Virus record (IMG/VR): IMGVR_UViG_3300032323_001214
Location: 124,001 to 188,000 of that record
Length of the DNA stretch: 64,000 bases
Direction: 5' to 3' (one strand)
The position numbers and the translations under genes are program-made. The notes beneath the pieces were generated by a model. That model ran no database searches. It saw only the letters and a list, made by a program, of their open reading frames with translations, and was not told the DNA's origin. Below, one piece after another: positions 24,174 to 55,810 of the stretch (positions within the stretch are counted from its first letter, which is position 1; every line of letters begins with the position of its first letter).

Positions 24174-24569
24174 ATGAGAGCAAAAGAATTTATTACAGAA
24201 CAAAGAACAGATGGACTAACAGTTGTATCTTACTCTTTGCCCAACACCTACATCATGCCTGATTTAAAAAATAATGATTTCTATGAGTTATATAGATTTG
24301 GCGTAGCGTTTGCTGCTGTTAGAGGTGAAGGCGGTCAAGATGACGGTGTTCAAAATGAATTTAAAAATGAATTTCAGGCAGAAACATCTTGGGGAGAGCA
24401 TCAATTAGTTTCTTCCGAATTCGATGAAGACCTAGGCAATACTATTGACAAAACCTTGAAAAAAGTAGGAAAGACTGGTAAAAAATTAGTCACCAGTGCT
24501 AATAGTAATGAAATACCTAACACCAATGTACAATCAACTCTCAAACCCTTTAAAGGATACACAAGATGA
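24174..24569 (+). CDS. Putative head-internal protein, paralogue A
   Basis: Starts MRAKEFITE; ends KPFKGYTR. Confidence 0.6.
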   Translation: MRAKEFITEQRTDGLTVVSYSLPNTYIMPDLKNNDFYELYRFGVAFAAVRGEGGQDDGVQNEFKNEFQAETSWGEHQLVSSEFDEDLGNTIDKTLKKVGKTGKKLVTSANSNEIPNTNVQSTLKPFKGYTR

Positions 24570-24943
24570 GAGCAAATGAATTTGTGTCTGAATCTAAGAT
24601 GGGTAAAATATCTGACCACCAACAACAAGCAACTCGTGGGTTAAATATTTTTTCAAAGAAGATAGACAGCTATGATAGACTATATGATTTAAATCGTTTA
24701 ATGATGGCTGTAGCAAGTAGCGATGGAATAAACCCAATTGAAATGCCTGCAGAAAGTTGGGTAGGTAAACACAATACTGCACACGCCTACACTAAAGAAG
24801 AACAAGATATGCTCAAATTAGCATATGAAGCCGCGGGTCTAGAGTATATAGATATAAACAAAGGTGATTTAGATAGTGAAGAATTAGAGTCAACTAACAC
24901 CCAAAGCATTGCAAAACCCTTCAAGGGCTATAAAAGAAAATAA
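24566..24943 (+). CDS. Putative head-internal protein, paralogue B
   Basis: Starts MRANEFVSE; ends KPFKGYKRK. Confidence 0.6.
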   Translation: MRANEFVSESKMGKISDHQQQATRGLNIFSKKIDSYDRLYDLNRLMMAVASSDGINPIEMPAESWVGKHNTAHAYTKEEQDMLKLAYEAAGLEYIDINKGDLDSEELESTNTQSIAKPFKGYKRK

Positions 24944-24995
24944 TTTCACTGTCAGTTTTGAGAATAAGTAATTGTATCAAATTACAGGATTTTCA

Positions 24996-25688
24996 ATGCT
25001 TATAGATATAAACACAACACTAGACCTAATCAAACTCAAATTTTATAATGAGTGGCTATATACTGCACACATTTACGATGAGGGGGATAGTCAGTTTCAC
25101 AAAGACCTGACTGCACAGGTTGTAAAACAATATATAGACCCACTTAACATTCCTAAAAATGCTAAAATCTTAGACCTGGGTTGCGGTCCTGGATATTTCT
25201 TAGATGAGATGAAAGCACGTGAATATACCGATCTTACCGGAGTTACATTAAGTCCAGGAGATATCAAGCTATGTGAAAGTAAAGGTCACACAATCAAACC
25301 ATATGATTTGACTTTTATTCCACAAAAAGATGGGTATCATGACGAATCAGTGGATTTTGTATTTTTGCGACATGCATTGGAACACAGTCCATATCCTATC
25401 TTTAGTTTAATGGAGTATAATCGTATACTAAAACAATTTGGCAAGATTTACATTGAAGTGCCTGCACCAAATTGCGATAGAAAACACGAATGGAATTTAA
25501 ATCACTACAGCATTTTAGGTGAACAGCAGTTGGCTGCACTATTAGTTCGTTGCGGTTTTAACATAGACAAATTTGAAAACTTAGAGTTTGAATTAGGTGT
25601 ACCTGATGAAACTGGAGAAATCAAAAAAGTAAAAGAAAAATACTATTGTATTGTTGCGACTAAGCAAAGACCACTAGATATTAAATAA
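24996..25688 (+). CDS. Class I SAM-dependent methyltransferase
   Basis: ILDLGCGPG, GVTLS, DESVDFVFLRHALEH, RILKQFGKIYIEVP. Confidence 0.92.
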   Translation: MLIDINTTLDLIKLKFYNEWLYTAHIYDEGDSQFHKDLTAQVVKQYIDPLNIPKNAKILDLGCGPGYFLDEMKAREYTDLTGVTLSPGDIKLCESKGHTIKPYDLTFIPQKDGYHDESVDFVFLRHALEHSPYPIFSLMEYNRILKQFGKIYIEVPAPNCDRKHEWNLNHYSILGEQQLAALLVRCGFNIDKFENLEFELGVPDETGEIKKVKEKYYCIVATKQRPLDIK

Positions 25689-25693
25689 ACGAT

Positions 25694-25724
25694 AAATACT
25701 CACTAACAAGTGAGTATTTTTTTT
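25694..25724 (+). terminator. Terminator hairpin overlapping a late promoter
   Basis: AAATACTCAC-taacaa-GTGAGTATTT plus T-run; its 5' arm overlaps ATAAATA at 25692-25698. Confidence 0.65.
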
Positions 25725-27566
25725 ATGGCCTATCCAGAACCAAGTAACGTTGCGCCGTGGTATTTACGCAACATCAATCAAGCATTAGCATTAGATGAAG
25801 CATCCGGGAACGTTTTTGTTCGTACTGGATTCGAAGGTAATATTATCATTACTGGTAATGTTGAAATTCCAGGCACAGTAACAGTAAATAGTTCTGCTGA
25901 AGATCCCGTACACGTTCACCTAGATGAAATTGGTACATCCGGTATTCTTGATGTACCTTATATGCCAATCGGCGGCAATGTAATAGTAACTTCAGGTAAC
26001 ATTAATGCTAATGTAACTGGTAGTAATGTTGGATTAACTGGTAATCTTGCTGGTATAACGGGTAATGTTAATATTGGCACTATGCCGGCAATTACGGGTA
26101 ATGTAAATGCTAATATTACCGGTGGCAATGTTAATGCCGCAGTAACCGGTACAGTGACAGTAAGCACTATATCATCTAATGTTACTGTGGTAGACGGTGG
26201 TGGTAGTTTAACTATTGACGGTAATGTTGGAGTTACCGGTAATGTTAACATTGGCACAATGCCAAATGTTAATGCAAACATCACTGGTGGCAATGTAACC
26301 GTAAGTCAGGGTACAAATCCATGGGTAGTGACTGGTAATCTTACTGCTACTATCGACAATAACACTAGTGTAATCATTTCAGGCTTCAGTGGTGCAACAA
26401 GTGATGCGTTTGGTAGATTGCGTGTAAGCGAACCATATACACTATTTGATACTCAATCTCGCTATTACGATCATGGTCAATTTTCTAGTTCAATATCAGG
26501 CACCGCTAATGTGGTGTATGTAGAAGCACAAAGTTCTTTCCAATTAAATGTAGGAACTACTAACGGTGATTCAGTAATTAGAGAAACAAAACGAGTTTTT
26601 CCTTATCAACCTGGTAAGAGCCAACTAACATTAAACACATTCTGTTTCAGCACACCCAAAACAAACTTGCGTCAGCGTGTTGGTTTGTTTGGTGCCACTG
26701 ATGGTGTGTTCTTTGAGAATGACGGAACATATAATTATATGGTTATTCGTTCAGGGTCCACTGGGGTAGAAGAACGAGTAAGACAAGATGCTTGGAATGG
26801 TGATAGGTTGACAGGTGCCGGCGGAGTCAACAATCCATCAGGAATTACATTATATCCAGATCGTACACAGATTTATTATGCTGATGTTGAATGGTTAGGT
26901 GTAGGTAGTGTACGTGTTGGATTTGTTATCAACGGAGCTTATGTACTATGCCACACATTTAACCACGCTAACCAAACTGGCAATACCAAAGTGTATATGA
27001 CCACTGCTACATTACCAATTCGTTATGAGATAACTAACACGGGCGCAACTGCTGGTGCTAGTATGATGACGCAAATTTGTAGTACAGTTATCAGTGAGGG
27101 TGGTTACAACAGTTTTGGAACTACACAAACAGCAGGAACCGGCACCACACAAAAACGATTAGCTAACGCAAATACATATTATCCTGTTGTAAGCATTAGA
27201 TTGGCATCAAATAGATTAGATAGTATTGTTTTCCCTAGACAGGTTGATGTATTAAGCCCTAGTGTTAACTACTACCGCTGGGTATTGTTGCTGAATCCAA
27301 CATTAACCGGTGCTACTTTTGCCGGAACCAGTCCAACTGGTACGGTCCAATATGATTTGGCAGCCACAGCGATATCGGGTGGAACAGAAATTCAATCAGG
27401 ATATGCTGCATCCAGAGAACTTACTCAACTGAGTGCTATTGACTTCTTCCAGTTTCAATTAGGAAGAACATTAGCTGGTGTTAGTGATGTTGTTACATTG
27501 GCTCTTGCTGCTACTGCAAATAACGCTGATGTACTAGCTGAGTTGGGCTGGCAAGAATTAACTTAA
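25725..27566 (+). CDS. Virion structural protein with N/V/T/G-rich repeats
   Basis: Repeated VTGNVNIGTMP..NANITGGNV units; beta-rich C-terminal domain starting DAFGRLRVSEP; late promoter upstream. Confidence 0.65.
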   Translation: MAYPEPSNVAPWYLRNINQALALDEASGNVFVRTGFEGNIIITGNVEIPGTVTVNSSAEDPVHVHLDEIGTSGILDVPYMPIGGNVIVTSGNINANVTGSNVGLTGNLAGITGNVNIGTMPAITGNVNANITGGNVNAAVTGTVTVSTISSNVTVVDGGGSLTIDGNVGVTGNVNIGTMPNVNANITGGNVTVSQGTNPWVVTGNLTATIDNNTSVIISGFSGATSDAFGRLRVSEPYTLFDTQSRYYDHGQFSSSISGTANVVYVEAQSSFQLNVGTTNGDSVIRETKRVFPYQPGKSQLTLNTFCFSTPKTNLRQRVGLFGATDGVFFENDGTYNYMVIRSGSTGVEERVRQDAWNGDRLTGAGGVNNPSGITLYPDRTQIYYADVEWLGVGSVRVGFVINGAYVLCHTFNHANQTGNTKVYMTTATLPIRYEITNTGATAGASMMTQICSTVISEGGYNSFGTTQTAGTGTTQKRLANANTYYPVVSIRLASNRLDSIVFPRQVDVLSPSVNYYRWVLLLNPTLTGATFAGTSPTGTVQYDLAATAISGGTEIQSGYAASRELTQLSAIDFFQFQLGRTLAGVSDVVTLALAATANNADVLAELGWQELT

Positions 27567-27594
27567 TAGGTTAATGCCCAAATAAATACTCATT

Positions 27595-29142
27595 ATGAGT
27601 AACGCACCTTCGTTAGTTAAAAATCCTTATACTAAAACAGTTTTTAAAACTGATAAAGAACTACAGGATTTCATCAAATGCTGTGATCCGGATACAGGTT
27701 ATCTATACTTCATGGATAACTTCTTCTACATACAACACCCTACAAAGGGTAGTATGTTGTATCATCCATGGGATTATCAAAAACGATTGATTGATACATA
27801 TCATAGATATCGCTATTCGATCAGCCTGATGCCTCGTCAATCAGGTAAGTCTACATCAGCCGCAGGATACTTACTTTGGTACGCAATGTTTTGTCCAGAC
27901 AGTACTATCTTAGTTGCCGCACACAAGTATACAGGCGCACAAGAGATTATGCAACGGATACGCTATGCATATGAAAATTGTCCTGACTACATTAAAGCAG
28001 GTGTAACAACATATAATAAAGGCTCACTAGACTTTGAGAACGGCAGTCGTATCGTTTCGGCAACCACTACTGAAAATACTGGTCGTGGTATGTCTATTAC
28101 ACTACTATACCTAGACGAATTTGCATTCGTTCGTCCAAGTATTGCTAAAGAATTCTGGACAGCTATTACACCCACATTGTCAACTGGTGGTAAAGCAATT
28201 ATTACAAGTACCCCAAACAGCGATGAAGATCAGTTTGCGTTCATTTGGAAAAGTGCTAACAAGACAGAAGATGAGTTTGGTAACACTACTGAACTTGGCA
28301 TAAATGGCTTTAGAGCATATAGAGCATATTGGAATGAACAGCCTGGTAGAGATCAAAAGTGGGCTGATGAAATGAAAGCACAGCTTGGTGAGGATCGTTT
28401 CAACCGAGAGATTGGTTGCGAGTTTATTATTGCTGATGAAACATTGATTAATCCAAACACACTAATTCAGTTAGAAGGTATTGAACCTATATCACGCATG
28501 GGTCAAGTACGCTGGTATAAGAAGCCTACAAAGGGCAATATATATTGTGTAGGTCTAGATCCAAGTTTAGGCACGGGTGGTGATCCAGCCGCAATTCAAA
28601 TATTTGAAGCAAACACTACTACACAAATAGGTGAATGGAAACACAATAAAACCGATATCCCTAATCAAATCAAGCTATTAGCTGAAATTAACAAATATAT
28701 AGTAGAATGCACCGGTGAACCCAATAGTATATATTATTCTGTAGAAAACAACAGTATAGGAGAGGCTTCACTTATATCACTCAATGAATACGGAGAAAGT
28801 AATATCCCGGGTTTATTTTTGAGCGAAGCTGGTAAAAAGCGTAAGGGCTTCAATACTACTCAAAAAGTCAAATTAACTGCTTGTGCTAAATTTAAAACAT
28901 TATTAGAGAGCAAAAAAATGAAGATCCATAGTAGGTCTTTAATTAGTGAATTAAAAGCATTTGTTGCTAATGGCGGAAGTTATGCGGCTAAAATAGGCGA
29001 TACTGACGATTTGGTCATGAGTTCATTGTTGGTGATTAGAATGCTACAAACATTAAGCGATTATCACTATAATTTGGAAGAACAGATTAGAGATCACGAT
29101 GAATATATCGCACCCTTACCGTTTTTTGCTGTTATATCCTAA
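27595..29142 (+). CDS. terL: Terminase large subunit
   Basis: LMPRQSGKST Walker A, LYLDEFAFV Walker B, TSTPN, GLDPSLG, DDLVMS. Confidence 0.96.
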   Translation: MSNAPSLVKNPYTKTVFKTDKELQDFIKCCDPDTGYLYFMDNFFYIQHPTKGSMLYHPWDYQKRLIDTYHRYRYSISLMPRQSGKSTSAAGYLLWYAMFCPDSTILVAAHKYTGAQEIMQRIRYAYENCPDYIKAGVTTYNKGSLDFENGSRIVSATTTENTGRGMSITLLYLDEFAFVRPSIAKEFWTAITPTLSTGGKAIITSTPNSDEDQFAFIWKSANKTEDEFGNTTELGINGFRAYRAYWNEQPGRDQKWADEMKAQLGEDRFNREIGCEFIIADETLINPNTLIQLEGIEPISRMGQVRWYKKPTKGNIYCVGLDPSLGTGGDPAAIQIFEANTTTQIGEWKHNKTDIPNQIKLLAEINKYIVECTGEPNSIYYSVENNSIGEASLISLNEYGESNIPGLFLSEAGKKRKGFNTTQKVKLTACAKFKTLLESKKMKIHSRSLISELKAFVANGGSYAAKIGDTDDLVMSSLLVIRMLQTLSDYHYNLEEQIRDHDEYIAPLPFFAVIS

Positions 29143-29161
29143 GGAAAAAGATAAATACATT

Positions 29162-31459
29162 ATGCCAAAAAGCAACGACTCAATAAACCGTGAATTATTT
29201 GACCTATTAAGCACCCGTGGGTATAGACCTACCATGCTTGATACCTCAGGTAAGGAAATTCCAGTACCGGAAGAAGCTGAAGTCTTTCAATTTAATTTTG
29301 TCAAAGACGATGTAGATTATGGTGTAGTCACTATATCTATTGATGGACTACACAAACTAGTCATATATTTTAATGATAAAATAGCAGATAGCGAAAAAGA
29401 AACATCAGATACTGATGATGTGTCTTGGTATAGGTTGTTAAATCACTTAAAACGTTTTGCAAAAAACCGTCAACTTAGCTTCCAAGTTAAAAATACAGAC
29501 CATTTGAAACATGATATGGCGAAAAGGGATCATATGAAAAAATTAGACGAAGGATATTACCCAATGGGTAAAAATAAGAGTTACAGTGATGCTGTTCCTC
29601 AAGTTAAAATTGTTATCGAACACACTAGAAATATAGTCGAAGGTGAACAACGATATCGCAATGTAGCCCGTATATTTGTAGAAAACACTGACGGAGAGCG
29701 TTTCTTGTTACCTACAACTAAGCCAGGTATCGCTAGAGTTTATGCTAGACACATAGCTGAAGGTGGCACACCATATGATGATAGAGCCAATCATATTACA
29801 TCACTTGTTGAAGAATACAACAAAATGGCAGGATTCGTTCGTGCTACTAGAAACGGTCAATTTAATGAATCTGCACAACGTCTAGTATTAGAGGGTGCAA
29901 ATCACTATACTAAATTACGTGAGACATTAAGTCGTATGGCTGGTAGTAGAGGTTACAATACATATTTTGAAAGTTGGACTCCATCATTGATGGAAGATGA
30001 AATTGAAGAAGCTAACCTGAATGAATTGTTTGTTCAAGAAACACTTGACCCTCGTATTGAAAGTGTAATGCCAATATTATCTAAGTTACAAAAGAACTTA
30101 GGTGAAATGAAAGAAGTTAATGCGTTGGCTGAATGGGCAGATAGTTTGCTTGAGGGCGGTGATGGTGGTGAAGCGAGTGAAGAACCGCCCGAGTCCAAAG
30201 AAGGTGAAACTGCCGAAGACGGTAATGAATCTCCGGAAGATGATTTGTCAGAAGCTGCTGGTGCAGAAACATTAGCACATAATGATGAAACTGAAGAAGG
30301 TAACTTAAAAGCTTTTGACTTAGACGAAGGTATATTAGATACTGTTAAAAAAGTCGGTGGTAAAGTGCTAGACAAACTAGGTCACAGTAGTGATGAAGAT
30401 TTGTTGAAAGACTTGAAAAAGAGAGCAGGCGTCCGTAACCCAGAAACAGGGAAACCAAGTATGGCACAATCTGATGTTGAGAAGCGTGTCGATGAAGTTG
30501 ACATGGGTCAGTATGATGCTCGTAAATCAACTACCAAAGGTGAAACTACTCCGGAACAGGAAAAAAGCTTCCGTGAAAAAGTAAAGCAATATTCTAAAGA
30601 ATTAGAGCAACGTCAAAATAAAAAGCAAGGCATGACAGAAAGCAATTCTTGGGATCGGTTATCAGGTGATACTAGCAATGTAGATCCTGAACATCTGGAA
30701 TATTTACAAAAACAAGCTGAGATTTCAAGAAGAACAGGGTTAGCAGTTGGTGATCGTGTTACCTTAAAAAATAGACCTGGCTTTGAAGGCGAAATAGTAC
30801 ACGATTGGGGCGGTGGAGATTATACTATTTCCGGTGAAGGTGGTGGAATGAAGCAAAGCAATAATCATAGAGCAAATGCAAGGATTATACAAAAAATCCA
30901 AGGCATGGCGGAAGGCGGTGCAAAAGATCGTCAATGGTCTAACAAAGACATGGAGAGGTTGCGTGTTGCCACCCGAGACTTTGATGATATAATGGCATCT
31001 GATGGGCCTGACCAAACCAAACAAGATTTAATCAAGAAGCGAATTCAAACAAAACCCATGGCAGGTCCCAGGGGAGTATTGCCCGAGCAAGGTGTAGCGG
31101 AAGCAGCAACACCAGCCAGTGTCAGCAAAGTATTGAGACTAATACAACGACATAAACCAGAATGGTTTGACAATTATGGCATAGGCGAAGTTGAAGACGT
31201 TGTAGTTGATATGGCAGAAATGGGTCAGTTTCGAGGCACGAGCGATCGGGTCGCCATGGCTCTAGTAGGCCAAGAACTTGAATCAATGTACGGTCAGCAA
31301 GGTATGGCAGAAGGTGAGTTTGCAGGCGACTATGCTACAGGTGAAGCAGGTCAATGGCGTAACAAAGGACCCAAAGCACACAAACCGGCAACAATCGGTG
31401 ATTTAGTTGGTGAAGGCCAAGAAGACTTAAACGCAATAAAGCGTTTATTGGGTAAGTAA
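29162..31459 (+). CDS. Large acidic putative head/core protein with a modular C-terminal half
   Basis: Late promoter 4 nt before ATG; four QG(M/V)(A/T)E motifs delimit short modules. Confidence 0.6.
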   Translation: MPKSNDSINRELFDLLSTRGYRPTMLDTSGKEIPVPEEAEVFQFNFVKDDVDYGVVTISIDGLHKLVIYFNDKIADSEKETSDTDDVSWYRLLNHLKRFAKNRQLSFQVKNTDHLKHDMAKRDHMKKLDEGYYPMGKNKSYSDAVPQVKIVIEHTRNIVEGEQRYRNVARIFVENTDGERFLLPTTKPGIARVYARHIAEGGTPYDDRANHITSLVEEYNKMAGFVRATRNGQFNESAQRLVLEGANHYTKLRETLSRMAGSRGYNTYFESWTPSLMEDEIEEANLNELFVQETLDPRIESVMPILSKLQKNLGEMKEVNALAEWADSLLEGGDGGEASEEPPESKEGETAEDGNESPEDDLSEAAGAETLAHNDETEEGNLKAFDLDEGILDTVKKVGGKVLDKLGHSSDEDLLKDLKKRAGVRNPETGKPSMAQSDVEKRVDEVDMGQYDARKSTTKGETTPEQEKSFREKVKQYSKELEQRQNKKQGMTESNSWDRLSGDTSNVDPEHLEYLQKQAEISRRTGLAVGDRVTLKNRPGFEGEIVHDWGGGDYTISGEGGGMKQSNNHRANARIIQKIQGMAEGGAKDRQWSNKDMERLRVATRDFDDIMASDGPDQTKQDLIKKRIQTKPMAGPRGVLPEQGVAEAATPASVSKVLRLIQRHKPEWFDNYGIGEVEDVVVDMAEMGQFRGTSDRVAMALVGQELESMYGQQGMAEGEFAGDYATGEAGQWRNKGPKAHKPATIGDLVGEGQEDLNAIKRLLGK
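30626..31314 (+). repeat. Four dispersed CAAGG(C/T)(A/G)T(G/A)(G/A)C(A/G)GAA repeats
   Basis: Copies start at 30626, 30899, 31088 and 31298; spacings 273, 189 and 210 nt are all in frame. Confidence 0.75.
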
Positions 31460-31514
31460 GTTCACAAAAACCTCACATAAAAAGTGAGGTTTACCATATC
31501 TGGCATAAATATAC

Positions 31515-31543
31515 TTGACACTAGAAGAAAGTACTGCTATACT
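31515..31543 (+). promoter_or_regulatory. sigma70 promoter for gp32
   Basis: TTGACA-N17-TATACT with extended TG. Confidence 0.85.
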
Positions 31544-31621
31544 TACTCTTGTGTTAGTCACTAATAGGTAGTGGCGACTATTAAAAAAAGAGACCATCTC
31601 AATTTATAAGGAAATAAAATC

Positions 31622-32620: not shown

Positions 32621-32628
32621 TAGGTGAT

Positions 32629-32650
32629 AGGGGCTTCGGCCCCTTCCTTA
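32629..32650 (+). terminator. Intrinsic terminator with UUCG loop
   Basis: AGGGGC-ttcg-GCCCCT-TCCTT. Confidence 0.8.
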
Positions 32651-32660
32651 GGAGAACAAC

Positions 32661-32888
32661 ATGACACTACCTGATGAACGCTACCGCGCCCTTAAACAAG
32701 GTAAAAAGTTATTGGAAGAATTATGCGACCCCGGTCGTACTCCTCGTGTTCCTAGCCTTGTTAGGGACAGAGCAAGAGGTGCATTGCGACATTACCCATC
32801 TGACTATGAATTGGAGCGTATGGCAGAAAAATGCCCCGAATTACTTGATACACAACCATTTGGTGTGTACACTACAATAAACAAATAA
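32661..32888 (+). CDS. Hypothetical protein
   Basis: GGAG Shine-Dalgarno; MTLPDERYRA...RARGALRHYP. Confidence 0.8.
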   Translation: MTLPDERYRALKQGKKLLEELCDPGRTPRVPSLVRDRARGALRHYPSDYELERMAEKCPELLDTQPFGVYTTINK

Positions 32889-32896
32889 GGATTATA

Positions 32897-34891: not shown

Positions 34892-35554
34892 ATGTCAACA
34901 ATCTACTATGTATATCAATTAATCGATCCAAATACCGATCAACCATTTTATATAGGAAAGGGCAAGGGAGACCGAGCCCTTTCCCATTTAACACCAAATA
35001 AAAAGACCAACAATCCGCGAAAGGATGCTAAAATTGCTGAGATTAGAAGTTGCGGGCATGAACCTAAAATAATATACTTGTTTGAAAATCTTATGGATAC
35101 AGAAGCATATGTCAAAGAAGAAGAATTAATTAAGACTTTGGGAAGAATAGGATATGATGAAAATGGAATTTTAACTAATATAAAACTTAATGCAAAACCA
35201 CCTTCACAAAAAGGAAAAAAGAGAGTTTTTTCCGAAGAACATAAAAAAAAGCTATCAGCAAAATTAAAAGGCAAGAAAAAAACAACACCACCCTGGAATA
35301 AAGGTTTGACTAAAGATTCTGATAATAGGATTAAAGAAGGTGCAAAAAATAGAAGTATAGTAGGAAATCTTCATCAAGTAGGTCAACAATATTCTGATGA
35401 CCGAGTACAAAAAATAAAAGAAAAGCTAACCGGAAGAACAATGACAGACACCCAAATAGAAAAAATGTCAGTAGCAAAAAAGGGAAAGACATGGGAAGAA
35501 ATCTTTGGTGAAGAAGGAGCCAAACTTCGCCGCAATAGGGTAAAAAAAGTTTGA
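34892..35554 (+). CDS. GIY-YIG (LEM-3-like) homing endonuclease with NUMOD3-like tail
   Basis: YYVYQLIDP..DQPFYIGKG...R...H, EA...E..LI...GR, ILTN; SEEHKKKLS and PWNKGL motifs; own late promoter. Confidence 0.88.
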   Translation: MSTIYYVYQLIDPNTDQPFYIGKGKGDRALSHLTPNKKTNNPRKDAKIAEIRSCGHEPKIIYLFENLMDTEAYVKEEELIKTLGRIGYDENGILTNIKLNAKPPSQKGKKRVFSEEHKKKLSAKLKGKKKTTPPWNKGLTKDSDNRIKEGAKNRSIVGNLHQVGQQYSDDRVQKIKEKLTGRTMTDTQIEKMSVAKKGKTWEEIFGEEGAKLRRNRVKKV

Positions 35555-41189: not shown

Positions 41190-41268
41190 TATAAATATTA
41201 GTGTAGTTCGCGGGCGTAGGAACCCCAACTACTCTAATGCTATATAGGAGCACCAGCATGACTATTTA
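41190..41268 (+). promoter_or_regulatory. TATAAATA late promoter with a structured leader over the endonuclease start
   Basis: TTAG.GTAGTT/AACTAC.CTAA stem, TGCT/AGCA stem over GGAG, and TAAATA/TATTTA closing pair. Confidence 0.6.
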
Positions 41269-41995
41269 CTATTTGTGTGTAAAAACACATTCTATTACCG
41301 GCTTGAAATATCTTTGTCAAACTACAAAATCCGACCCATATAAATATCTGGGATCAGGAAAATATTGGAGGTTACACCTTAAAAAACATGGATATGAGCA
41401 TTTAACTGAAGTGATTAAAGAATGTAATACCAAAGAAGAAGTCAAAGAGTGGGGAGTTCATTTTAGTAAGCTTTGGAATGTAATAGAAAGTGATGAATGG
41501 GCAAACTTAATGGAAGAGAACGGCGGAGGTGGCAAAACAACACCTGTGCCGTGGAACAAAGGAAAGAAGTCCTCACATAAAACAATACAAAAACAAAAAG
41601 ATGCTGTTACTAAAAGAACAACCGAAACTAAACAAAAAATGATTGAATCTGGTAAACGATCCTACGAAAAAACCTTTAAGCTCTTAACAAAAGAACAACG
41701 ACAAGAAAAGTATAAAAATAGTCTAGGTAAACTTACTACAGAACAACGTAGAGAAATAGGAAAAAAATCAGAAAACAAGGGCGGAGAAGTATGGAGTAAA
41801 GCATCAGCTGGCAAGGTTACGGTTACTGATAAGTTAGGAAATAGTAAACGGATACCGCAAGACTTGTTTAATCAAATGAAAAATGATATGATTATTAATA
41901 ATGTTCCGATGCTAGACTGGGAATTTGTTCAAGTTAGTTCATTGGAGTCAAAGCGTAGAAGAAATAATGGCAACGAAAAAGAATACCCCAACTGA
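41258..41995 (+). CDS. Seg-like (GIY-YIG variant) homing endonuclease
   Basis: YYLCVKTHSITGLKYLCQT...YKYLGSG.YW..HLKKHG, WANL.EE.G.GG, PWNKG. Confidence 0.82.
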   Translation: MTIYYLCVKTHSITGLKYLCQTTKSDPYKYLGSGKYWRLHLKKHGYEHLTEVIKECNTKEEVKEWGVHFSKLWNVIESDEWANLMEENGGGGKTTPVPWNKGKKSSHKTIQKQKDAVTKRTTETKQKMIESGKRSYEKTFKLLTKEQRQEKYKNSLGKLTTEQRREIGKKSENKGGEVWSKASAGKVTVTDKLGNSKRIPQDLFNQMKNDMIINNVPMLDWEFVQVSSLESKRRRNNGNEKEYPN

Positions 41996-47830: not shown

Positions 47831-47834
47831 TCTC

Positions 47835-47863
47835 TTGATTATCTGTATCAACTATGTTATACT
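47835..47863 (+). promoter_or_regulatory. sigma70 promoter, leaderless primase start
   Basis: TTGATT-N17-TATACT; ATG 7 nt later. Confidence 0.65.
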
Positions 47864-47869
47864 GACTAG

Positions 47870-48850: not shown

Positions 48851-50288
48851 GAAGCAGATTGATTACACACCGGAAGTACAAAAGCTTTTTTTAAGAATGA
48901 TGATGACTAACGCTGAGTTATATACTCGGGTTATGAACATTATGAATAGCGAAAACTTTGACAAAAGCCTGCGCCCAGTTGCAGATATGTTCAAAGAACA
49001 CACAGACAAATACAAAGTATTACCTGATGTAAATCAAGTTAAAGCTATGACAGGTGTAGAGATAGAACCTATTCCTGAGATGAGCGAAGGTCACAGTGAA
49101 TGGTTCTTTGATGCATTTGAATCATTTACAAAAAGACAAGAACTAGAACGAGCTATTCTTAAAGCGGCTGACTTACTTGAGAAAGGTGACTTTAGTCCTG
49201 TTGAAAAACTAATCAAAGATGCAGTGCAGATTAGTCTACAGCGAGACATGGGTACCGATTATTTCTTTGACCCTAAAGGTCGTATTAACAAATACTTCAA
49301 TGCAGGCGGACAAGTCTCGACAGGCTGGCCGCAAATGGATCGTATCTTGTATGGTGGCATGAGTCGAGGTGAACTCAACATCTTTGCAGGTGGTTCGGGT
49401 TCAGGCAAATCTCTTGTTATGATGAACATTGCATTGAACTGGTTACAGACAGGTATGAGCGGTGTATACATCACACTTGAATTGAGTGAGGAGCTAACAT
49501 CACTGCGTACTGATGCTATGTTGACACAGATGGGCACGAAGTCAATTCGCAAAGACATTGATACTACCGATCTTAAAGTTAAGATGGTAGGTAAGAAGTC
49601 TGGTAAGTATCGTGTTAAAGGATTGCCCGCACAAAGTAATGTGAATGATATTCGTGCTTATCTTAAAGAAGTGCAGATTCAAACAGGTATTAAAATTGAC
49701 TTTGTTATGGTGGACTATCTTGATTTGGTTATGCCTGTTTCTGTTAAAGTTAATCCTAACGATCAGTTCATCAAGGACAAGTATGTTGCAGAAGAATTGC
49801 GTAACTTGGCAAAAGAGATGGGTATCTTATTAGTGACAGCAAGTCAGTTGAATCGTAGCGCGGTTGATGAAATTGAATTCGATCATAGTCACATTGCAGG
49901 TGGTATCAGTAAGATTAACACTGCTGACAACGTGTTTGGTATTTTCACAAGTCGTAGTATGCGTGAACGCGGTAAGTATCAGATTCAATGTATGAAAAGT
50001 CGCAGTTCAACTGGTGTAGGTATGAAGATTGATTTAGATTACGACATTGAAACAATGCGTATCAGTGACAGTGATCCTGATGGCTATGCTGACCAACAAG
50101 CAAAATACAGACCCTCCCCTAGCCCAACCGACATTATGAAACAAGTAAAAACACAATCAACATTAGTATCATCAGATCCTATCATAAATCAAGCTACAGG
50201 AGAGATATTAGAACCGGAAAACAAGCGTATTATAGCAGATGTTCAGAGTAATAAACTCAAATCTCTGCTTAATTCTTTAAAGAAATAA
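48828..50288 (+). CDS. gp41: Replicative DnaB-like helicase (gp41-like)
   Basis: STGW..MD, AGGSGSGKS, TLELSE, VDYLDL, TASQLNR, KSR. Confidence 0.94.
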   Translation: MQNKTDSKKQIDYTPEVQKLFLRMMMTNAELYTRVMNIMNSENFDKSLRPVADMFKEHTDKYKVLPDVNQVKAMTGVEIEPIPEMSEGHSEWFFDAFESFTKRQELERAILKAADLLEKGDFSPVEKLIKDAVQISLQRDMGTDYFFDPKGRINKYFNAGGQVSTGWPQMDRILYGGMSRGELNIFAGGSGSGKSLVMMNIALNWLQTGMSGVYITLELSEELTSLRTDAMLTQMGTKSIRKDIDTTDLKVKMVGKKSGKYRVKGLPAQSNVNDIRAYLKEVQIQTGIKIDFVMVDYLDLVMPVSVKVNPNDQFIKDKYVAEELRNLAKEMGILLVTASQLNRSAVDEIEFDHSHIAGGISKINTADNVFGIFTSRSMRERGKYQIQCMKSRSSTGVGMKIDLDYDIETMRISDSDPDGYADQQAKYRPSPSPTDIMKQVKTQSTLVSSDPIINQATGEILEPENKRIIADVQSNKLKSLLNSLKK

Positions 50289-50325
50289 TTATTGCTGTTA
50301 GAATAAATACTATTAGGATAATTAT

Positions 50326-50574
50326 ATGCAAAAACAAACTCGCAGCCTGTTACAGGAATTAGAGGCTATCGGTAATCACCGTGATACTAATCATATCATT
50401 GAAAGCCGAGGCCACAATATTATCACTAGTGCAATTAATCTATTAGAAATGATTAACCGTCACTATACGCCTGAACAAGCGGCAGTATTAGAGAGAAAAT
50501 TGCTACATGCTATCAAAAGCAAGGATCAAACTAAATTTGCCAAATCTTTAAGGAAAAATCGTGAAATTGAATGA
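50326..50574 (+). CDS. Hypothetical late protein
   Basis: ATAAATA at 50303 and AGGA Shine-Dalgarno. Confidence 0.75.
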   Translation: MQKQTRSLLQELEAIGNHRDTNHIIESRGHNIITSAINLLEMINRHYTPEQAAVLERKLLHAIKSKDQTKFAKSLRKNREIE

Positions 50575-52111
50575 ATTTAAACAAAAAACAAGTAACCGTA
50601 AATTAAATGAATCACAACTGTCTGAACTAGATATGAGTGACGTTATAGGTAATTACGGAGCAGCCGGCGTAAAAACGATAGCTGATAAGATCAATCCTTT
50701 TAGCAAAGGTTCTGGAAAGATCAGCGTTAAAGATAAAATGGCTAGTGAAATGTTCGTTAAAGATTTCATAGGTCGTGCAAGTGAAGATTTAGCTAGGGGA
50801 ATAAAAGCCGGTTTAGTAAATCCAAAGCCAGCAGTGGCAGCAGCTCCTGACTCAGAAAAGGTTGATCCTTATAAGCCGGCCGGTAAAACACCAGCTACAA
50901 CACCCACTGGATCAGACGATAGAATTGAACCTACAATGGACCCGGTAAAAGCAACTGCACCGACTGCTCCAACAGCGCCCGGCGCCACAGCACCTGGACC
51001 TGCATCATTAGCGGCAGCAGGCGCAAAGGCTCAAAAACAGACTAACCAAAACTTAAATGCTTATGTGCAAAATGCAGCCAAGACTTTAAATTCTGCAACA
51101 AGTCCGCAACAGAAAATGGCTCTAACTAAAGAGTTGGTTAATTTTATGGCTGACCGCAAATCTTATCCTGAATGGGATAACGCAGTAGCAACAGTACAAC
51201 AAGTCATCAAGCGTGGCGGTTTAAATCCTAACTTTGCTAATTCTGCTATGAATAGGGTTAAAGCTGGTCAGACTATGGCAGAATCATGGCAAATATATGC
51301 TATTAACAAATTACTTGAAGCAGTTAATATTTCTTGGGATGATTTGAATCTAGTAGCGTTGAACGAAAGTAAAAATTCTTGGAAAGTTGTTGATACAAAA
51401 TATCATAAACTAAACAATATATTTGAAAGCATATTAGAAGCAGACAATCAATACCCTGACACAATAAGTTCGTACTTGCAAAAAATGTTTAAGAAGTACA
51501 CAAAGGATATTGTGGTAGACCCTGCTGTCATCAATAGCGTTAAGCAAATTGCTGACCAAGCAGAACAAAATTATAACAGCATGAATCCAATGAAACGAGG
51601 TGCAAGACAAGAACTTGCAAAGCTTGGTAACATGGCGTATGCTCTATCTTACAGAGATAGTGAAGGCTATAAGCACGATAAATTTAGCGCAGCCGATGCA
51701 CAGTCTACACCGCAAACTGGTTCAGGTGAGACTTCTGGTTTAGATGCGCTAAGAGGCAGATCAAGTCCTGAAGCATCCTCAACTGCAGCCACAGCGGCAG
51801 CATCCGGTGAAGAAGGAATAGAACCGGCTACTAAGCAAATGGCTAACCTCATAAACAAAATGACTACCGCAGAGTCAGGCGATGATCTTTCACAGATTGT
51901 CAAGTTATCATTGCAGAAGTTATACAAAGTAGACAAAGCGGCATACAGTGCATTAATGAAGGAACTTAGAGGAAACACTAATGTTGCTAAAGCAGAAAAG
52001 CCGGCTACTTCATTCGTTCCACCTGCAGCACCCGCACCGGCTACTGCAAGTAGACCTGCAGTGACTGCTGAAAGCAAAATAAAAACATATAAAAAATGGG
52101 GACAGCCGTGA
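50561..52111 (+). CDS. Ala/Pro-rich putative head-internal protein
   Basis: Starts MKLNEF; many (L/M/T)xE motifs. Confidence 0.55.
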   Translation: MKLNEFKQKTSNRKLNESQLSELDMSDVIGNYGAAGVKTIADKINPFSKGSGKISVKDKMASEMFVKDFIGRASEDLARGIKAGLVNPKPAVAAAPDSEKVDPYKPAGKTPATTPTGSDDRIEPTMDPVKATAPTAPTAPGATAPGPASLAAAGAKAQKQTNQNLNAYVQNAAKTLNSATSPQQKMALTKELVNFMADRKSYPEWDNAVATVQQVIKRGGLNPNFANSAMNRVKAGQTMAESWQIYAINKLLEAVNISWDDLNLVALNESKNSWKVVDTKYHKLNNIFESILEADNQYPDTISSYLQKMFKKYTKDIVVDPAVINSVKQIADQAEQNYNSMNPMKRGARQELAKLGNMAYALSYRDSEGYKHDKFSAADAQSTPQTGSGETSGLDALRGRSSPEASSTAATAAASGEEGIEPATKQMANLINKMTTAESGDDLSQIVKLSLQKLYKVDKAAYSALMKELRGNTNVAKAEKPATSFVPPAAPAPATASRPAVTAESKIKTYKKWGQP

Positions 52112-53253
52112 ATTTATCTGAATCCCTAAGGCTGTTAAAAGATAAAATCAATCAAATAGAATTGGTTGAAGATAAAGGACATTTAGATCATCCTGAAGAT
52201 TTGATATTTTTGGGAGGATCACAGGGGGCTAATCGTGCTGTTCAATCTACTATTGCTACAGTTAAAAATCCAGCGACAGTTACAATCAAGTGGGATGGCT
52301 ATCCTGCACTGATTTTTGGTCGTGGAACCAACGGCAAGTTTACTATTATGGACAAGCATATGTTCAATAAGAAAGACCAAACTGGCCGTCAAGTATTCAG
52401 CCCTCAACAGTTTGTTCAGTATGACCAAGCACGTGGTGTGGACCGTTCAGGGTTATATCAGATTATAGCAGACATATGGCCAGGGCTTGAAAAAGCAGAT
52501 AATAGCAAGGGTTTTTATTGGGGCGACTTGTTGTTCACTCAACCACTACAAGACCAAAACGGTATGTACAAGTTCAAAGCTAACCCCAATGGTATTACTT
52601 ATACAGTTGAAGCCGATAGTGAAGTAGGACAATTATTTAAAGGCAAGCAAGCTGCTATTGTTGTTCACCAATTTATTCCTGCAACTGCTGCAACTACAGA
52701 TGAAGCAACACCATTAGATGGTGGTATAGGTGCTTTAAAGAACAATAGCAATGTAGCGATTGTTCCTGCAAAAATGCCCAACACTCCTAAACTAACAATA
52801 AACAATAAGTTAGTTAATAAAGCTAATAGTGATATTAAAAAATATGGAGCCGCTGTGGATCAATTGATGAACACCGCCCCTCAAGCCGCTAATGCATTTA
52901 AAGGACTGTTTACAGTTTATATCAATAAGAAGATTGTTGCAGGTGACTTGAATAATCTAGTAGACGGATTCATGGAATTTTTTAATAGCAGACCAATGAC
53001 TGATTCTATGAGAACTAAGTTAACACAACACTTAGAAGCTAATAAAGAAGGACTAGTTGGTGCATTCACTATCTGGGCTAGCTTATATCAGTTGAAAATG
53101 TCTGTTGTAGACCAGCTTAACAAAGCCGCAGAAGCAAGCCCTGTCAAAGGCTATTTACAAGACGGAACACAAACCCAAGAGGGTTTTGTCGCTAACGGAC
53201 TCAAATTTGTAGATAGAATGGGATTTAGTCGGCAGAATCTAGCCGGAAGATAA
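52108..53253 (+). CDS. Protein with ligase-superfamily-like KxDG motif
   Basis: GHLDHPED, TIKWDGYPALIFG, FYWGDLLF, late EGFV motif; GTGA overlap with the upstream gene. Confidence 0.55.
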   Translation: MNLSESLRLLKDKINQIELVEDKGHLDHPEDLIFLGGSQGANRAVQSTIATVKNPATVTIKWDGYPALIFGRGTNGKFTIMDKHMFNKKDQTGRQVFSPQQFVQYDQARGVDRSGLYQIIADIWPGLEKADNSKGFYWGDLLFTQPLQDQNGMYKFKANPNGITYTVEADSEVGQLFKGKQAAIVVHQFIPATAATTDEATPLDGGIGALKNNSNVAIVPAKMPNTPKLTINNKLVNKANSDIKKYGAAVDQLMNTAPQAANAFKGLFTVYINKKIVAGDLNNLVDGFMEFFNSRPMTDSMRTKLTQHLEANKEGLVGAFTIWASLYQLKMSVVDQLNKAAEASPVKGYLQDGTQTQEGFVANGLKFVDRMGFSRQNLAGR

Positions 53254-53335
53254 GCCCAAATCCTGGATTTTTTTGTACCAGGCATAAATAATACTATGAA
53301 TCAGTAGGATTCAAAATATTTAAAGGAATACTAAA

Positions 53336-53731
53336 ATGGCACAATTTACACGTGTAAACGGCGACTTTTTACCGTTGATCAACTATGATACAGATGCATA
53401 CACAAACTCTGGCGTTAACGCTATCACATCTGGCGCAACAGTACAACCAGCTGGTCCTAAGCTAGCTTTCGGAACTATCACATTCACTGGTGCAACTACA
53501 CCAAGTGGTGCTGACTTGCAAAAGACTTTCCAGATCATTCAGCAGTTAGCTACTATCATGACATATGAGTACACTGAAGTTGGTGACAACAGTGATACAT
53601 TAGCACTTGCTATCTATCCAGTTGGCGCATGGGACTTTACAAACGGTGGTGATCTTGATGCTGCATTGACAGCAGCTACAGGTCTAAACTATGCCGTAAC
53701 TACAGCAGCTACAGCTACATTCACAAACTAA
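53336..53731 (+). CDS. Small virion structural protein
   Basis: Late promoter at 53284, AAGGA Shine-Dalgarno, A/T/G-rich composition, terminator downstream. Confidence 0.65.
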   Translation: MAQFTRVNGDFLPLINYDTDAYTNSGVNAITSGATVQPAGPKLAFGTITFTGATTPSGADLQKTFQIIQQLATIMTYEYTEVGDNSDTLALAIYPVGAWDFTNGGDLDAALTAATGLNYAVTTAATATFTN

Positions 53732-53750
53732 TCTAATTAGTTTTGTAAAC

Positions 53751-53777
53751 AACCCGAGATTTATTCTCGGGTTTTTT
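53751..53777 (+). terminator. Intrinsic terminator
   Basis: AACCCGAGA-tttat-TCTCGGGTT plus T-run. Confidence 0.85.
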
Positions 53778-53796
53778 ACGGCTATTAAATAGCTGT

Positions 53797-54255
53797 ATGA
53801 GTTTTAAAATTTCTTGCTATACCCTATTTGACATCACTAATACCGGTGTGTTAAACCGTAGCAAACCTGATCCTGAAATAGAACTCAAAGAATGGTTACA
53901 AAAGAGAAATACTCAGTGTAACTTTGATACAATACTTCAAGCTATTTCGTTGCGTTCACAACCTGAAATTATTAATCTTCCTAATATAATGAAAATTAAA
54001 TTTGATGATACTCATGAGTTTGGATTTTTATTTGATCAAGAAGAGGTAACAGAATATAACTGTTGGACCTTTGACTTTGAGATACAACATCCTAGTGTTT
54101 TTGATAATGGTATTTCTGAACTAGGTGCATTATATGATGATTGTGACAGGGTACCCATGATAAAAGTAGGTACAGAATGGGAGAAACTTCCAGAGTTCCT
54201 AGATACGTCTGATGAATTGAAAAACATATATTTTAAGATTGCCCAACATGAATAA
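53797..54255 (+). CDS. Hypothetical late protein
   Basis: TTAAATA 5 nt before ATG. Confidence 0.75.
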   Translation: MSFKISCYTLFDITNTGVLNRSKPDPEIELKEWLQKRNTQCNFDTILQAISLRSQPEIINLPNIMKIKFDDTHEFGFLFDQEEVTEYNCWTFDFEIQHPSVFDNGISELGALYDDCDRVPMIKVGTEWEKLPEFLDTSDELKNIYFKIAQHE

Positions 54256-54721
54256 TCAGCGCAGAATAGAAAAGTTTATAAACCAAGAGATTTTGCATAA
54301 TTTGCAAGATATCGTTATATTCCAAGAGGATGATGGTAGCTACAAATTGTTCAATGCTTATACTATCTCCAAGAATTCACAAAAAGAATACATTGTAACC
54401 GGTAATACTACTATTACTCCCAGCAAGTTTTATGTATTGAAAAATGCAGTTTCTTGGTGTATATTTGATAAACGAAACAAAATGTACGAAGCCAGAAGAA
54501 TTGCAGAATTAGACAATAAATTGATTTCGGTAGACGTTGACATACATATACACCAATCTTTATACAAAAAAGCTAAAACACCTGATGACAAATTGATATA
54601 TCTAGCCAAATTAAATGAAGACAGGATTAGAAAAAAGAATGTGATAAAGGAACTAGAAGATTATGTATCTGAGTCAAATATTTGGCAAAGTAAAAGATTT
54701 AACAGAAAACCACAACAATAA
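54248..54721 (+). CDS. Hypothetical protein
   Basis: Overlapping ORF, 157 aa. Confidence 0.75.
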   Translation: MNNQRRIEKFINQEILHNLQDIVIFQEDDGSYKLFNAYTISKNSQKEYIVTGNTTITPSKFYVLKNAVSWCIFDKRNKMYEARRIAELDNKLISVDVDIHIHQSLYKKAKTPDDKLIYLAKLNEDRIRKKNVIKELEDYVSESNIWQSKRFNRKPQQ

Positions 54722-54764
54722 GCCATAAAAGATAAATACTTTATACTAGTCTTGGAATAACACT

Positions 54765-55487
54765 ATGAAACTAAACGATTTTGATAATAAGCCAGTAGCA
54801 ACTGCTACTAAAGCACTTAAGCAACATTTTGAATTACCTTTCCAGGTAGAAAAAATGTCTATGCCTGCAACCCAAACTATGCTACGTAAAGTACGTGGTT
54901 TGATGAGCGAAACAAAACAACAACCAAAGTTTTATCAAAGCCAAAATAATGCAAGTTATATGAAATTGGTTTTTATGGAGCAAGCGTTGTCTCAACACTA
55001 CAGTGAACTAAGATCACATCCACAAACACGTATTGTTGTTGAAAACGAAGAAGTAGAAAAATCACAGACTATTCTTGCCGCACAAGATATGGTTGACTCC
55101 ATTCAGAAGATGGTTGAGCAAGTTAGTGATATGATTGTTAAAGAATTACCAGCATTGGTTGATTCAGTTCAATCTGAGATTGGTGTTAACGAGAGTTCAT
55201 CATTCCAACAACAAGCTTCAGAAGCATTGACTTCATTGCAAGCTGCATTGACCCAAAGCCAAACTACAATGAAGTCTGCCGTTAACGGTATCACTGGTCA
55301 AGGTGGTGCTGAAGCGTTTGACGATGCTTCAGGTATGGGTGGTGAATTAGCTGCTCCTATGCCAGGCGAAGAAGAAATTGGTATGGATGCATCCTTTGAT
55401 GACGATAACAGTGACATAGAAGTTTCTGCTGATATCGAAGAACCTGAAATCAGTGCTGTTGGTCCAGTAGGTCGTGCAAAAAGATAA
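54765..55487 (+). CDS. Putative prohead core/scaffold-like protein
   Basis: Late promoter; MKLNDF start; helical body with an acidic tail. Confidence 0.5.
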   Translation: MKLNDFDNKPVATATKALKQHFELPFQVEKMSMPATQTMLRKVRGLMSETKQQPKFYQSQNNASYMKLVFMEQALSQHYSELRSHPQTRIVVENEEVEKSQTILAAQDMVDSIQKMVEQVSDMIVKELPALVDSVQSEIGVNESSSFQQQASEALTSLQAALTQSQTTMKSAVNGITGQGGAEAFDDASGMGGELAAPMPGEEEIGMDASFDDDNSDIEVSADIEEPEISAVGPVGRAKR

Positions 55488-55492
55488 TAACT

Positions 55493-55810
55493 ATGTTATT
55501 GCATGAACTTAGTCCTAGTCCATTGCTGGTTAAATTAGTAGCTGTTGTCAGTCAACTGAAAAGTCAAATTGACAATGGTGAAGAAAAAAGCGAATGGACT
55601 GTTGACGAATTTCTAGACTATTTGAAAAACAATGATATCATACTAGACAAGTCAGACTTGTATAACATGATACAGAAACCCCCGCTTAATTCAAAAATAT
55701 CTAACATACAAGCAAACAACGTTATATTCAAAGGATATGATACTGAGGCTGCACCAGAAGATGATAGTAAAAAAATCGTCAAACAAATGGCTAAAAATGC
55801 TATAAAATAA
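55493..55810 (+). CDS. Hypothetical protein
   Basis: Starts MLLHEL; 105 aa. Confidence 0.7.
   Translation: MLLHELSPSPLLVKLVAVVSQLKSQIDNGEEKSEWTVDEFLDYLKNNDIILDKSDLYNMIQKPPLNSKISNIQANNVIFKGYDTEAAPEDDSKKIVKQMAKNAIK

Follow-up and report, generated by a model that had tools for sequence, protein, structure and literature searches.

An N-terminal tag resembling the T4 capsid targeting sequence on unrelated proteins of an uncultured freshwater jumbo phage

Introduction

Proteins injected together with phage DNA are the first phage factors to face the host defences, and in phage T4 they include a restriction-enzyme inhibitor and an enzyme that modifies the host RNA polymerase. Such proteins are hard to find, because they evolve fast in sequence and carry no family names. 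The subject of the present analysis is a short peptide, hereafter the tag, found at the N-terminus of several proteins encoded in a 64-kb stretch of viral DNA (the window), which spans positions 124,001-188,000 of the 249,606-bp IMG/VR contig IMGVR_UViG_3300032323_001214, with a completeness estimate of 67%. A sequence-only reading of the window had listed six N-termini of this kind and proposed that, like the capsid targeting sequence of T4, they mark a set of packaged and injected proteins.

All six N-termini are present in the sequence. Five of them begin with ATG, namely MRIKELTE at 7403, MRAKEFITE at 24174, MRANEFVSE at 24566, MKLNDF at 54765 and MLLHEL at 55493 (genes are named here by the window coordinate of their start), and the sixth, at 50561, is read VKLNEF from a GTG start behind a TAAGGA ribosome-binding site. 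The proteins carrying them are otherwise unrelated, with no similarity beyond the tag except in the tandem pair 24174/24566 (27% identity, E 3e-6), the two members of which also have in common a KPFKGY tail followed by two to three basic residues. Genetic code 11 was used throughout.

The FKGY-tail family and its operon

The tandem pair lies on the plus strand, directly behind a gene for a T4 gp9/gp10-like baseplate protein (23321..24172, plus strand, 283 amino acids (aa); PF07880, 31.2 bits, and baseplate PHROGs), the stop codon of which falls 1 nt before the first tagged gene. The latter (24174..24569) encodes a 131-aa protein, type A of the FKGY-tail family, with the tag at 24174-24200 and KPFKGY at 24543-24560, while the second tagged gene (24566..24943) encodes the 125-aa type B protein, with the tag at 24566-24592 and KPFKGY at 24914-24931; its start overlaps the stop of 24174 (ATGA). 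Further along the same strand are encoded a methyltransferase-domain protein, mentioned as context only (24972..25688; PF13489, 55.5 bits), a virion structural protein (25725..27566; phrog_1645) with GATAAATACT upstream at 25691, and the large terminase subunit (27595..29142), 50% identical to TerL of the Pseudomonas jumbo phage PA5oct.

At least 805 homologues of the 24174 protein were detected in public metagenomes. In the best 120 of them, conservation is highest over the first nine residues (mean entropy 0.31 vs 0.44-0.89 elsewhere), and the tail, K[PG]FKGYK[KR], hardly varies. When 80 related loci were fetched with the phrog_1645 gene as anchor, 120 open reading frames (ORFs) starting with the tag were found in them, the FKGY family being present in one to three tandem copies per locus, mostly with ATGA overlaps. 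The family divides into two types, corresponding to 24174 and 24566, and the A-B tandem recurs in relatives. In a diverse alignment of 49 sequences of the family M1, R2, E5, F6 and E9 are invariant and A3 is nearly so.

The fold predicted for the family is a generic ferredoxin-like alpha/beta fold. For the 24174 model, no match at E <= 0.001 was obtained with Foldseek against the PDB, VIA-align returned generic ferredoxin-like matches only (Z <= 5.1), and a structural feature search returned only viral clusters without names, below 0.9. The 24174 profile found nothing meaningful among PDB sequences, nor did tblastn of the protein find anything in 50,697 phage records. In PHROGs and Pfam, no family reached E <= 0.01 with 7403, 24174 or 24566, so that an internal-protein or Alt family was not matched either. 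The family was also considered as a small terminase and rejected, given its alpha/beta, ferredoxin-like rather than helical fold, its one to three divergent copies and the two other genes that separate it from TerL.

In the stretch coding for the tail, TTTAAAGGA could have been the ribosome-binding site of the next tandem gene, as TTT AAA GGA fits the usual upstream context. Among 88 family members, however, each of the six KPFKGY codons shows synonymous variation, and the tail is retained even in the copy that ends each array; on these two grounds such a role was rejected, and KPFKGYK[KR] is taken as a feature of the protein. An invariant S-x-E lies 18 residues before the C-terminus of the family (in 24174, S111-x-E113, window 24510-24518, with an equivalent in 24566) and is followed by an invariant Ser and then by the conserved tail. 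Judged from its sequence, this S-x-E may be a second protease site, releasing a basic C-terminal peptide.

The tagged ADP-ribosyltransferase fold at 7403

The gene at 7403..7762 (plus strand) encodes a 119-aa protein in which the tag (MRIKELTE, 7403-7426) is followed by a short linker and by a domain starting at LYHAT (residue 15). Homologues of this protein number 236. A model built from a 61-sequence alignment has a pLDDT of 79, with residues 1-9 below 50, and its best Foldseek matches are tRNA 2'-phosphotransferases (Tpt1/KptA; E 1e-4, probability 1.0, TM 0.52-0.58), other ADP-ribosyltransferases ranking below them; low-ranked matches to the A subunits of cholera and pertussis toxins were set aside as reflecting only the common ADP-ribosyltransferase (ART) fold. 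The family profile, in turn, aligns over the LYHGT motif with residues 87-122 of Tpt1 (E 0.006; consensus kvLYhatYkpllksikkkGL), and Y17, H18 and T20 are invariant. On the predicted model, the protein is thus a stand-alone ART-fold domain behind the tag. Its fold is Tpt1-like, yet it is not a Tpt1 orthologue, because it has 119 aa, its domain starts at residue 15 and the match begins only at Tpt1 residue 87; accordingly, identification as a two-lobe Tpt1 (~180 aa, with an N-terminal RNA-binding lobe) was rejected.

The same domain is found behind different leaders. Among the best 120 of the 236 homologues, 19 carry the strict tag (many as MRAxEF) and 32 a looser form, while 69 have other leaders or none. 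Since the Tpt1-like domain occurs with the tag, with other, lineage-specific leaders and with none, the tag appears as a separable module added to a pre-existing domain, and no other observation points to this so clearly. No orthologue of 7403 was found in five large relatives (described below), and its only matches in phage records are unannotated ORFs in nine Prevotella Lak megaphage genomes, at 33-38% identity. A sigma-70-like promoter-like site, which is a consensus match only (TTGTAA, 17 nt, TATAAT; 7291..7319, plus strand), lies 84 nt upstream of 7403 and may indicate early rather than late expression.

Enrichment of the tag in the contig

The sequence-only reading had suggested a motif scan of the whole genome, and such a scan gives more matches than chance would. 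Our own gene call on the entire 249,606-bp contig gave 256 proteins of at least 40 aa, and expected counts were obtained from 5000 shuffles of the N-terminal columns. The strict form ^M[KR]..E[FLI].?.E opens 5 of the 256 proteins vs 0.07 expected (0/5000 shuffles), the shorter ^M[KR]..E[FLI] six vs 0.75 (0/5000) and the loose ^M[KR]..[ED][FLIMV] eight vs 1.6 (1/5000), figures that overstate formal significance because the motif was chosen after seeing the data. The strict motif follows no internal Met within the called proteins of the contig, and in a six-frame scan it occurs with a start codon and a downstream ORF of at least 35 aa only six times. Five of these six matches begin 0-6 codons past the preceding stop, and the sixth, 32 codons past it, is a 77-aa gene of the head module.

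MKLNEF, MKLNDF and MLLHEL match the loose pattern only. Outside the window there are two more strict members, a 127-aa protein starting MKISELLES (contig 192551) and a 191-aa protein starting MRFNEILSES (contig 234283), and one head-module member, the 77-aa protein starting MKLFEMFE (contig 58765, minus strand). The tag is a short peptide at the extreme N-terminus, of the form M-[KR]-x-x-E-[FLI]-[IVL]-x-E, to which the MKL and MLL proteins conform in part. Its residues are of low confidence or unstructured in both predicted models (7403 and 24174), and the codons for Arg, Thr and Glu differ between the tags of this contig. None of the tagged proteins had a match to a family of replication or tail proteins. 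Besides the ART fold, hints of cargo function are limited to weak matches to a GNAT acetyltransferase, a T7 0.7-like kinase, ParB-like nucleases and DUF6321. The cargo families are not notably basic.

The tag in uncultured relatives

One to nine matches to the degenerate tag, mostly at dispersed sites, are found in each of five large relatives (267-364 kb; completeness at least 91% in four), with 23 of the 28 reading M-[KR]-[ASV]-x-E-[FL]; a control with the reversed pattern gave zero to one match in the same genomes. The 23 tagged ORFs recovered from the fetched stretches all open at their first Met. Without their tags, the 148 proteins collected sort into 18 BLAST clusters of 60-542 aa, and M-R-A-x-E-F-[IVL]-x-E opens at least 15 families in the relatives that are unrelated by BLAST and lie at dispersed loci. 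The body of the contig's own MRFNEILSE protein (234283) has a homologue in another phage that starts with the canonical MRAKEFIIE. These comparative data are independent of the post hoc choice of the motif.

The codons for Glu, Phe, Ile/Val and Thr vary across the tags of the relatives and, as codons vary in this contig too, selection acts at the level of the peptide; the tag as a DNA or RNA signal was rejected in view of this variation. The 18 clusters, the ART as opposed to the ferredoxin-like predicted fold and the occurrence of one and the same domain with and without the tag together describe a modular label.

The MKL and MLL proteins

The three remaining proteins have N-termini of a second form (class II), M-K-L-x-[ED]-[FL], with [LI]-x-[ED] at residues 3-5, and all are encoded on the plus strand. 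The first (50561..52111) is a basic, Ala/Pro/Thr-rich protein of 516 aa with the class II start (V/M)KLNEFK, initiated at GTG. MKLN[ED][FL]K persists in its 66 homologues, even where identity is only ~33%, and behind it come a linker that varies, a second [LV][DN]E[LF] and the conserved body. About 50 of the 66 are recorded with an (M/V)KLN[ED][FL]-type start; no orthologue was found in the five large relatives. Directly after this gene, and overlapping its end, a DUF6267 protein (134.7 bits) is encoded at window 52096-53253.

The second protein (54765..55487), acidic and of 240 aa, starts MKLNDF and matches phrog_14154, annotated as virion structural protein (E 5.9e-11), and its orthologues in the five relatives (36-56% identity) start MKLNDL, MKLQEL or MKLHEL. 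The third (55493..55810, 105 aa) has the class II-like start MLLHEL, is always encoded directly downstream of a 54765 orthologue, and has orthologues starting MRLFEL, MKIFEV, MLIREF or MRINEV. For 50561 and 55493, PHROGs and Pfam gave marginal or unnamed matches only. From their N-termini, the three proteins are likely substrates of the gp21-family prohead protease described below, perhaps as components of the prohead core or of the inner structure and not as injected cargo.

A T4-type head module and the T4 leaders

A head module is encoded on the minus strand at 54-61 kb of the same contig as the tagged proteins. It consists, in order, of a gp20-type portal (PF07230, 348 bits), the 77-aa MKLFEMFE protein at the place of T4 gp67, a 270-aa protein of very acidic composition, a prohead protease of the gp21 family (Peptidase S77; contig 56966-57601; PF03420, 97.7-98.2 bits), a homing-endonuclease-like ORF, a 369-aa ORF with an unnamed PHROG match only (phrog_10922), whose Glu/Arg/Leu-rich repeats suggest a coiled coil, and a gp23-type major capsid protein (PF07068, 329 bits). 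This order mirrors T4 20-67-68-21-22-23, the scaffold candidates having been assigned from position and composition alone. In the capsid protein the Pfam match begins at residue 54, upstream of which L-S-E is found at 41-43, followed by Ser; because this L-S-E precedes the Pfam match, a T4-like propeptide cleaved after Glu is likely. The contig holds no second Gp23/24-type gene. The tag is encoded in the same genome as the gp21-family protease and the T4-type head genes.

The T4 signal had been given correctly by the sequence-only reading: ipII and ipIII start MKTYQEFIAE (NC_000866), and cleavage occurs after Glu (PMC9026906). Further leaders in the T4 genome are those of ipI (MKTFKEF...ITE), gp24 (MAKINELLRE), alt (MELITELFDE) and gp67 (MEGLIEA) (NC_000866). 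The first 10 residues of IPIII suffice for incorporation into the T4 head, residues 4 and 7 of the tag mainly directing targeting and 8 and 10 processing, and Asp at position 10 blocks processing and not targeting (PMC9026906). T-even internal proteins are diverse, with the targeting tag as their sole conserved part (PMC5694885, PMC3012670). MRAKEFITE can be aligned with the T4 Q-E-F-I-A-E so that F6, I7 and E9 correspond to T4 F7, I8 and E10; the window tag thus has Phe, Ile/Val and Glu in the T4 order and spacing, one position nearer to the N-terminus.

Expression signals

The motif GATAAATA is found upstream of 30 genes contig-wide vs 1.8 expected (~16-fold), typically 25-35 nt before structural genes and homing-endonuclease-like ORFs. 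In the form GATAAATA(C) it is a close variant of the T4 late promoter TATAAATA, and it likely represents the late-promoter consensus of the clade. The window sites of GATAAATA(C) are at 23291, 25691, 29150, 34866, 47044, 54731, 56864 and 59852, and the genes preceded by the motif in the window include the gp9/10-like 23321, the phrog_1645 gene, 54765 and the tail-fibre gene 56897; outside the window it precedes several tagged genes. The putative late-type promoter GATAAATACA (23291..23300, plus strand), 30 nt before 23321, would head the operon 23321 -> 24174 -> 24566, and another, GATAAATACT (54731..54740, plus strand), lies 34 nt before 54765.

Interpretation and alternatives

The shared MR..E...E N-terminus is probably a T4-type capsid targeting sequence, in the form of a short unstructured propeptide. 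In such a mechanism the tag (clade consensus M-R-A-x-E-F-[IVL]-x-E) would dock the new protein on the scaffolding core of the assembling prohead and the shell would close round core and cargo, after which the gp21-family serine protease would cut after Glu, at E9, or at E8 in the shorter MRIKELTE and MKISELLE; the mature protein would then remain in the head with the DNA and enter the host at infection. Core binding, cleavage, virion presence and injection of the tagged proteins are what we infer by analogy with T4, and on that analogy the clear cargoes of the window would be 7403 and the tandem pair 24174/24566. The earlier proposal of T4-type targeting is thus partly supported. It is the best explanation for the MR..E...E proteins, backed by the T4-type head genes, by one label on unrelated proteins and by the similar leaders of three virion-detected proteins in the distant cultured relative PA5oct; for the MKL and MLL proteins, a weaker variant that may belong to core or structural proteins, it is plausible but weaker.

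A number of points weigh against targeting. The motif is a post hoc one. The 7403 gene lies behind a host-type sigma-70-like site and without the late motif, which weakens the case for this protein, and 50561 and the contig 192551 gene also lack the late motif. The class II proteins have no second Glu, and 54765 has Asp where Glu is expected. The cleavage rule is ambiguous, in that the first Glu of the tag forms A-x-E and the FKGY family has its invariant C-terminal S-x-E. None of the cargo proteins is homologous to T4 IPI, IPII, IPIII or Alt. Finally, none of PA5oct, Phosso, GAP32 and Vibrio phage 2.275.O has the canonical MRAxEF tag, and in these phages looser look-alikes only were found; as the closest cultured phages lack the canonical tag, the support drawn from PA5oct is a looser resemblance.

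The tag might instead dock its proteins to something other than the prohead, such as a chaperone of phage or host, an export route or a common regulatory partner, or act as a signal for timed degradation by a host protease; it would then define a regulon of effector-like proteins that stay out of the head. A tag that is modular and conserved at the protein level would suit such a role, and the early-type promoter-like site of 7403 fits proteins acting inside the infected cell. We nevertheless consider this unlikely, as the tag is close to the T4 propeptides at the functionally mapped positions, the genome has a T4-type protease and core with a small tagged protein inside the head module, the FKGY family appears to be co-transcribed with a baseplate gene behind a late-type motif, and virion proteins with similar leaders are on record for PA5oct.

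A different fate is conceivable for 50561, 54765, 55493 and possibly the FKGY family, which could be scaffold or core proteins like T4 gp22, gp67 and gp68, degraded or expelled at maturation. The acidic 54765 matches a virion-structural PHROG, the leader of the long, basic and low-complexity 50561 has two L-x-E sites, the 54765/55493 pair is conserved and syntenic in all five relatives, as expected of core parts rather than of variable cargo, and the FKGY family is near-universal and adjoins head and packaging genes. Still, the genes lie at 148 and 174-180 kb, far from the head module (54-61 kb), they show no homology to known scaffold proteins, and the FKGY copy number of 1-3 together with a fast-diverging middle is more like T4 internal proteins, so that we regard this possibility as quite unlikely; it would in any case keep the tag-and-protease mechanism, only the fate of the proteins being different. 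That the tag is a nucleic-acid signal (an initiation or downstream box, or a recombination boundary) or the frozen N-terminus of a fast-evolving superfamily, with no targeting, is very improbable. In its favour, the first residues are usually coded by ATG AGA GC, one family accounts for most of the tagged ORFs close to the terminase, and T-even internal-protein loci are highly variable apart from the shared targeting sequence (PMC3012670), but the codons vary among the tags of this contig and its relatives, the tag is found on at least two unrelated predicted folds, ART and ferredoxin-like, the ART domain exists with and without it, and the KPFKGY tail also shows free synonymous variation.

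A broader form of the targeting hypothesis, in which the tag is a clade-wide address label and the FKGY family bears two terminal signals (the N-terminal tag and a C-terminal peptide after S-x-E), is put forward tentatively and is rather doubtful. If it were true, the complete set of head-packaged, injected proteins of the lineage, at least 15 families, would be readable from sequence; it would include an ART-fold enzyme and, on weak matches only, possible kinase, acetyltransferase and ParB-like nuclease domains, and the FKGY proteins would undergo a double-ended processing not described for T4 internal proteins. A sequence-readable tag combined with a T4-type prohead protease would give a simple rule to list the injected proteins of uncultured lake jumbo phages, nominating dozens of unnamed families as candidate early-acting effectors, and the reach of the T4 loading mechanism would go far past the T-even phages. 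With a member of the clade in culture, the tag could also be used as a handle to load reporter proteins.

Other genes and lineage of the contig

The window has a GC content of ~37%, with most genes on the plus strand. Two stretches of it, compared by megablast with the 50,697 phage records, found no near relative. The large terminase is ~50% identical to those of PA5oct and the Sinorhizobium phage Phosso and ~44% identical to those of Rak2-like phages. The sequencing runs that hold parts of the region are labelled as freshwater, lake-water or plankton metagenomes, and no RNA run is among them.

Replication genes in the window encode a DnaB-like helicase, a primase, a UvsX-like recombinase, a single-strand-binding protein and a thymidylate synthase, while the structural genes (gp9/10-like baseplate protein, phrog_1645 virion protein, terminase, tail fibre and tail sheath) are scattered; no tRNA was found in the 64 kb. 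The auxiliary genes comprise those for a Nol-like carbamoyltransferase (phrog_1601) and a phosphate-binding transporter subunit (phrog_5385), at window 1130-2626 and 8788-9828, and for an Fe-S assembly protein. The latter is an Fe-S cluster biosynthesis gene (IscA/HesB-type, PF01521; window 55813-56133) that follows the 54765/55493 pair. In relatives (loci L108-L110) an IscU-like ORF adjoins it, and the contig has its own IscU-like ORF at 15384-15773; together, these genes suggest that a jumbo phage carries an auxiliary set for Fe-S assembly.

ORFs resembling GIY-YIG-type homing endonucleases, with starts of the form M..YVY or M.IYY, were found at window 34892-35554, 7963-8628 (minus strand) and 41258-41995 and at contig 56343-56969. 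One of them is confirmed by Pfam (LEM-3 GIY-YIG and NUMOD3), and one interrupts the head module, where it separates the protease from the scaffold-like gene. At contig 82835-102097, outside the window, lies a single ORF of 6,420 aa, preceded by a run of ORFs of 949-1,127 aa.

Comparison with known systems

PA5oct represents the nearest cultured lineage by terminase. In its record, gp104 (MKILEFNLTE), gp105 (VRLNEINLIE) and gp254 (MRLDEI) are structural proteins detected in the virion by ESI-MS/MS, gp104 and gp105 being adjacent paralogues and gp254 separate, whereas gp103 (MKLSEICILE) is not marked as detected. These leaders resemble the tag, but follow a looser consensus, and the bodies show no homology to the window proteins; processing and targeting are not discussed in the published PA5oct study. 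The PA5oct gene immediately upstream of the large terminase (gp281), in the same position as the phrog_1645 gene, is also recorded as detected in the virion by mass spectrometry. The annotated start of PA5oct gp213 (NC_071039.1, 179881-180267), MINIVMKIKEIILE, is maybe five codons too early: an internal Met gives the tag-like MKIKEIILE, and the gene adjoins the head maturation protease.

The jumbo phages phiKZ, 201phi2-1 and SPN3US likewise have many head-internal proteins, and their gp21-related protease cuts after Glu at [S/A/G]-x-E (PMC5694885), the first site of the tag described here being A-x-E. Their propeptides are, however, mostly longer than 100 residues rather than a shared short tag, and these phages lack T4-like scaffold genes.

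Within T4 itself, the gp24 propeptide MAKINELLRE has the pattern E-L-[LT]-(x)-E, which is matched by MKISELLE (contig 192551) and MRIKELTE (7403). Unlike gp24, a shell protein, the tagged proteins are not of the capsid fold, and the contig has one Gp23/24-type gene. T4 Alt is an ADP-ribosyltransferase, packaged in the head and injected. It is processed by gp21 (PMC9026906, PMC5694885). Like Alt, which starts MELITELFDE, the 7403 protein has an N-terminal L-x-E leader and a predicted NAD-utilising ART fold, but it has 119 aa vs 682, is nearest to the C-terminal lobe of Tpt1/KptA and has a host-type promoter-like site upstream, so that the parallel would be functional and not homologous.

The closest counterparts are T4 IPI, IPII and IPIII (Mullaney and Black 1996, reviewed in PMC9026906, PMC3012670 and PMC5694885), which likewise carry, at their very N-terminus, a tag of some 10 residues built on the core E-F-[IV]-x-E. 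As in T4, the tagged proteins are small and unrelated, with variable bodies behind a constant tag and Glu at the expected cleavage position, and a gp21-family protease and T4-type portal and capsid proteins are encoded in the same genome. The tag differs from that of T4 in being one residue shorter and in reading M-R-A-x-E-F instead of M-K-T-Y-Q-E-F, and its carrier is a distant freshwater jumbo phage, known from sequence alone, and not a T-even phage. The mechanism itself is known; what is new is its apparent use, with a consensus of its own and a large set of unnamed cargo proteins, in an abundant lineage of uncultured freshwater jumbo phages.

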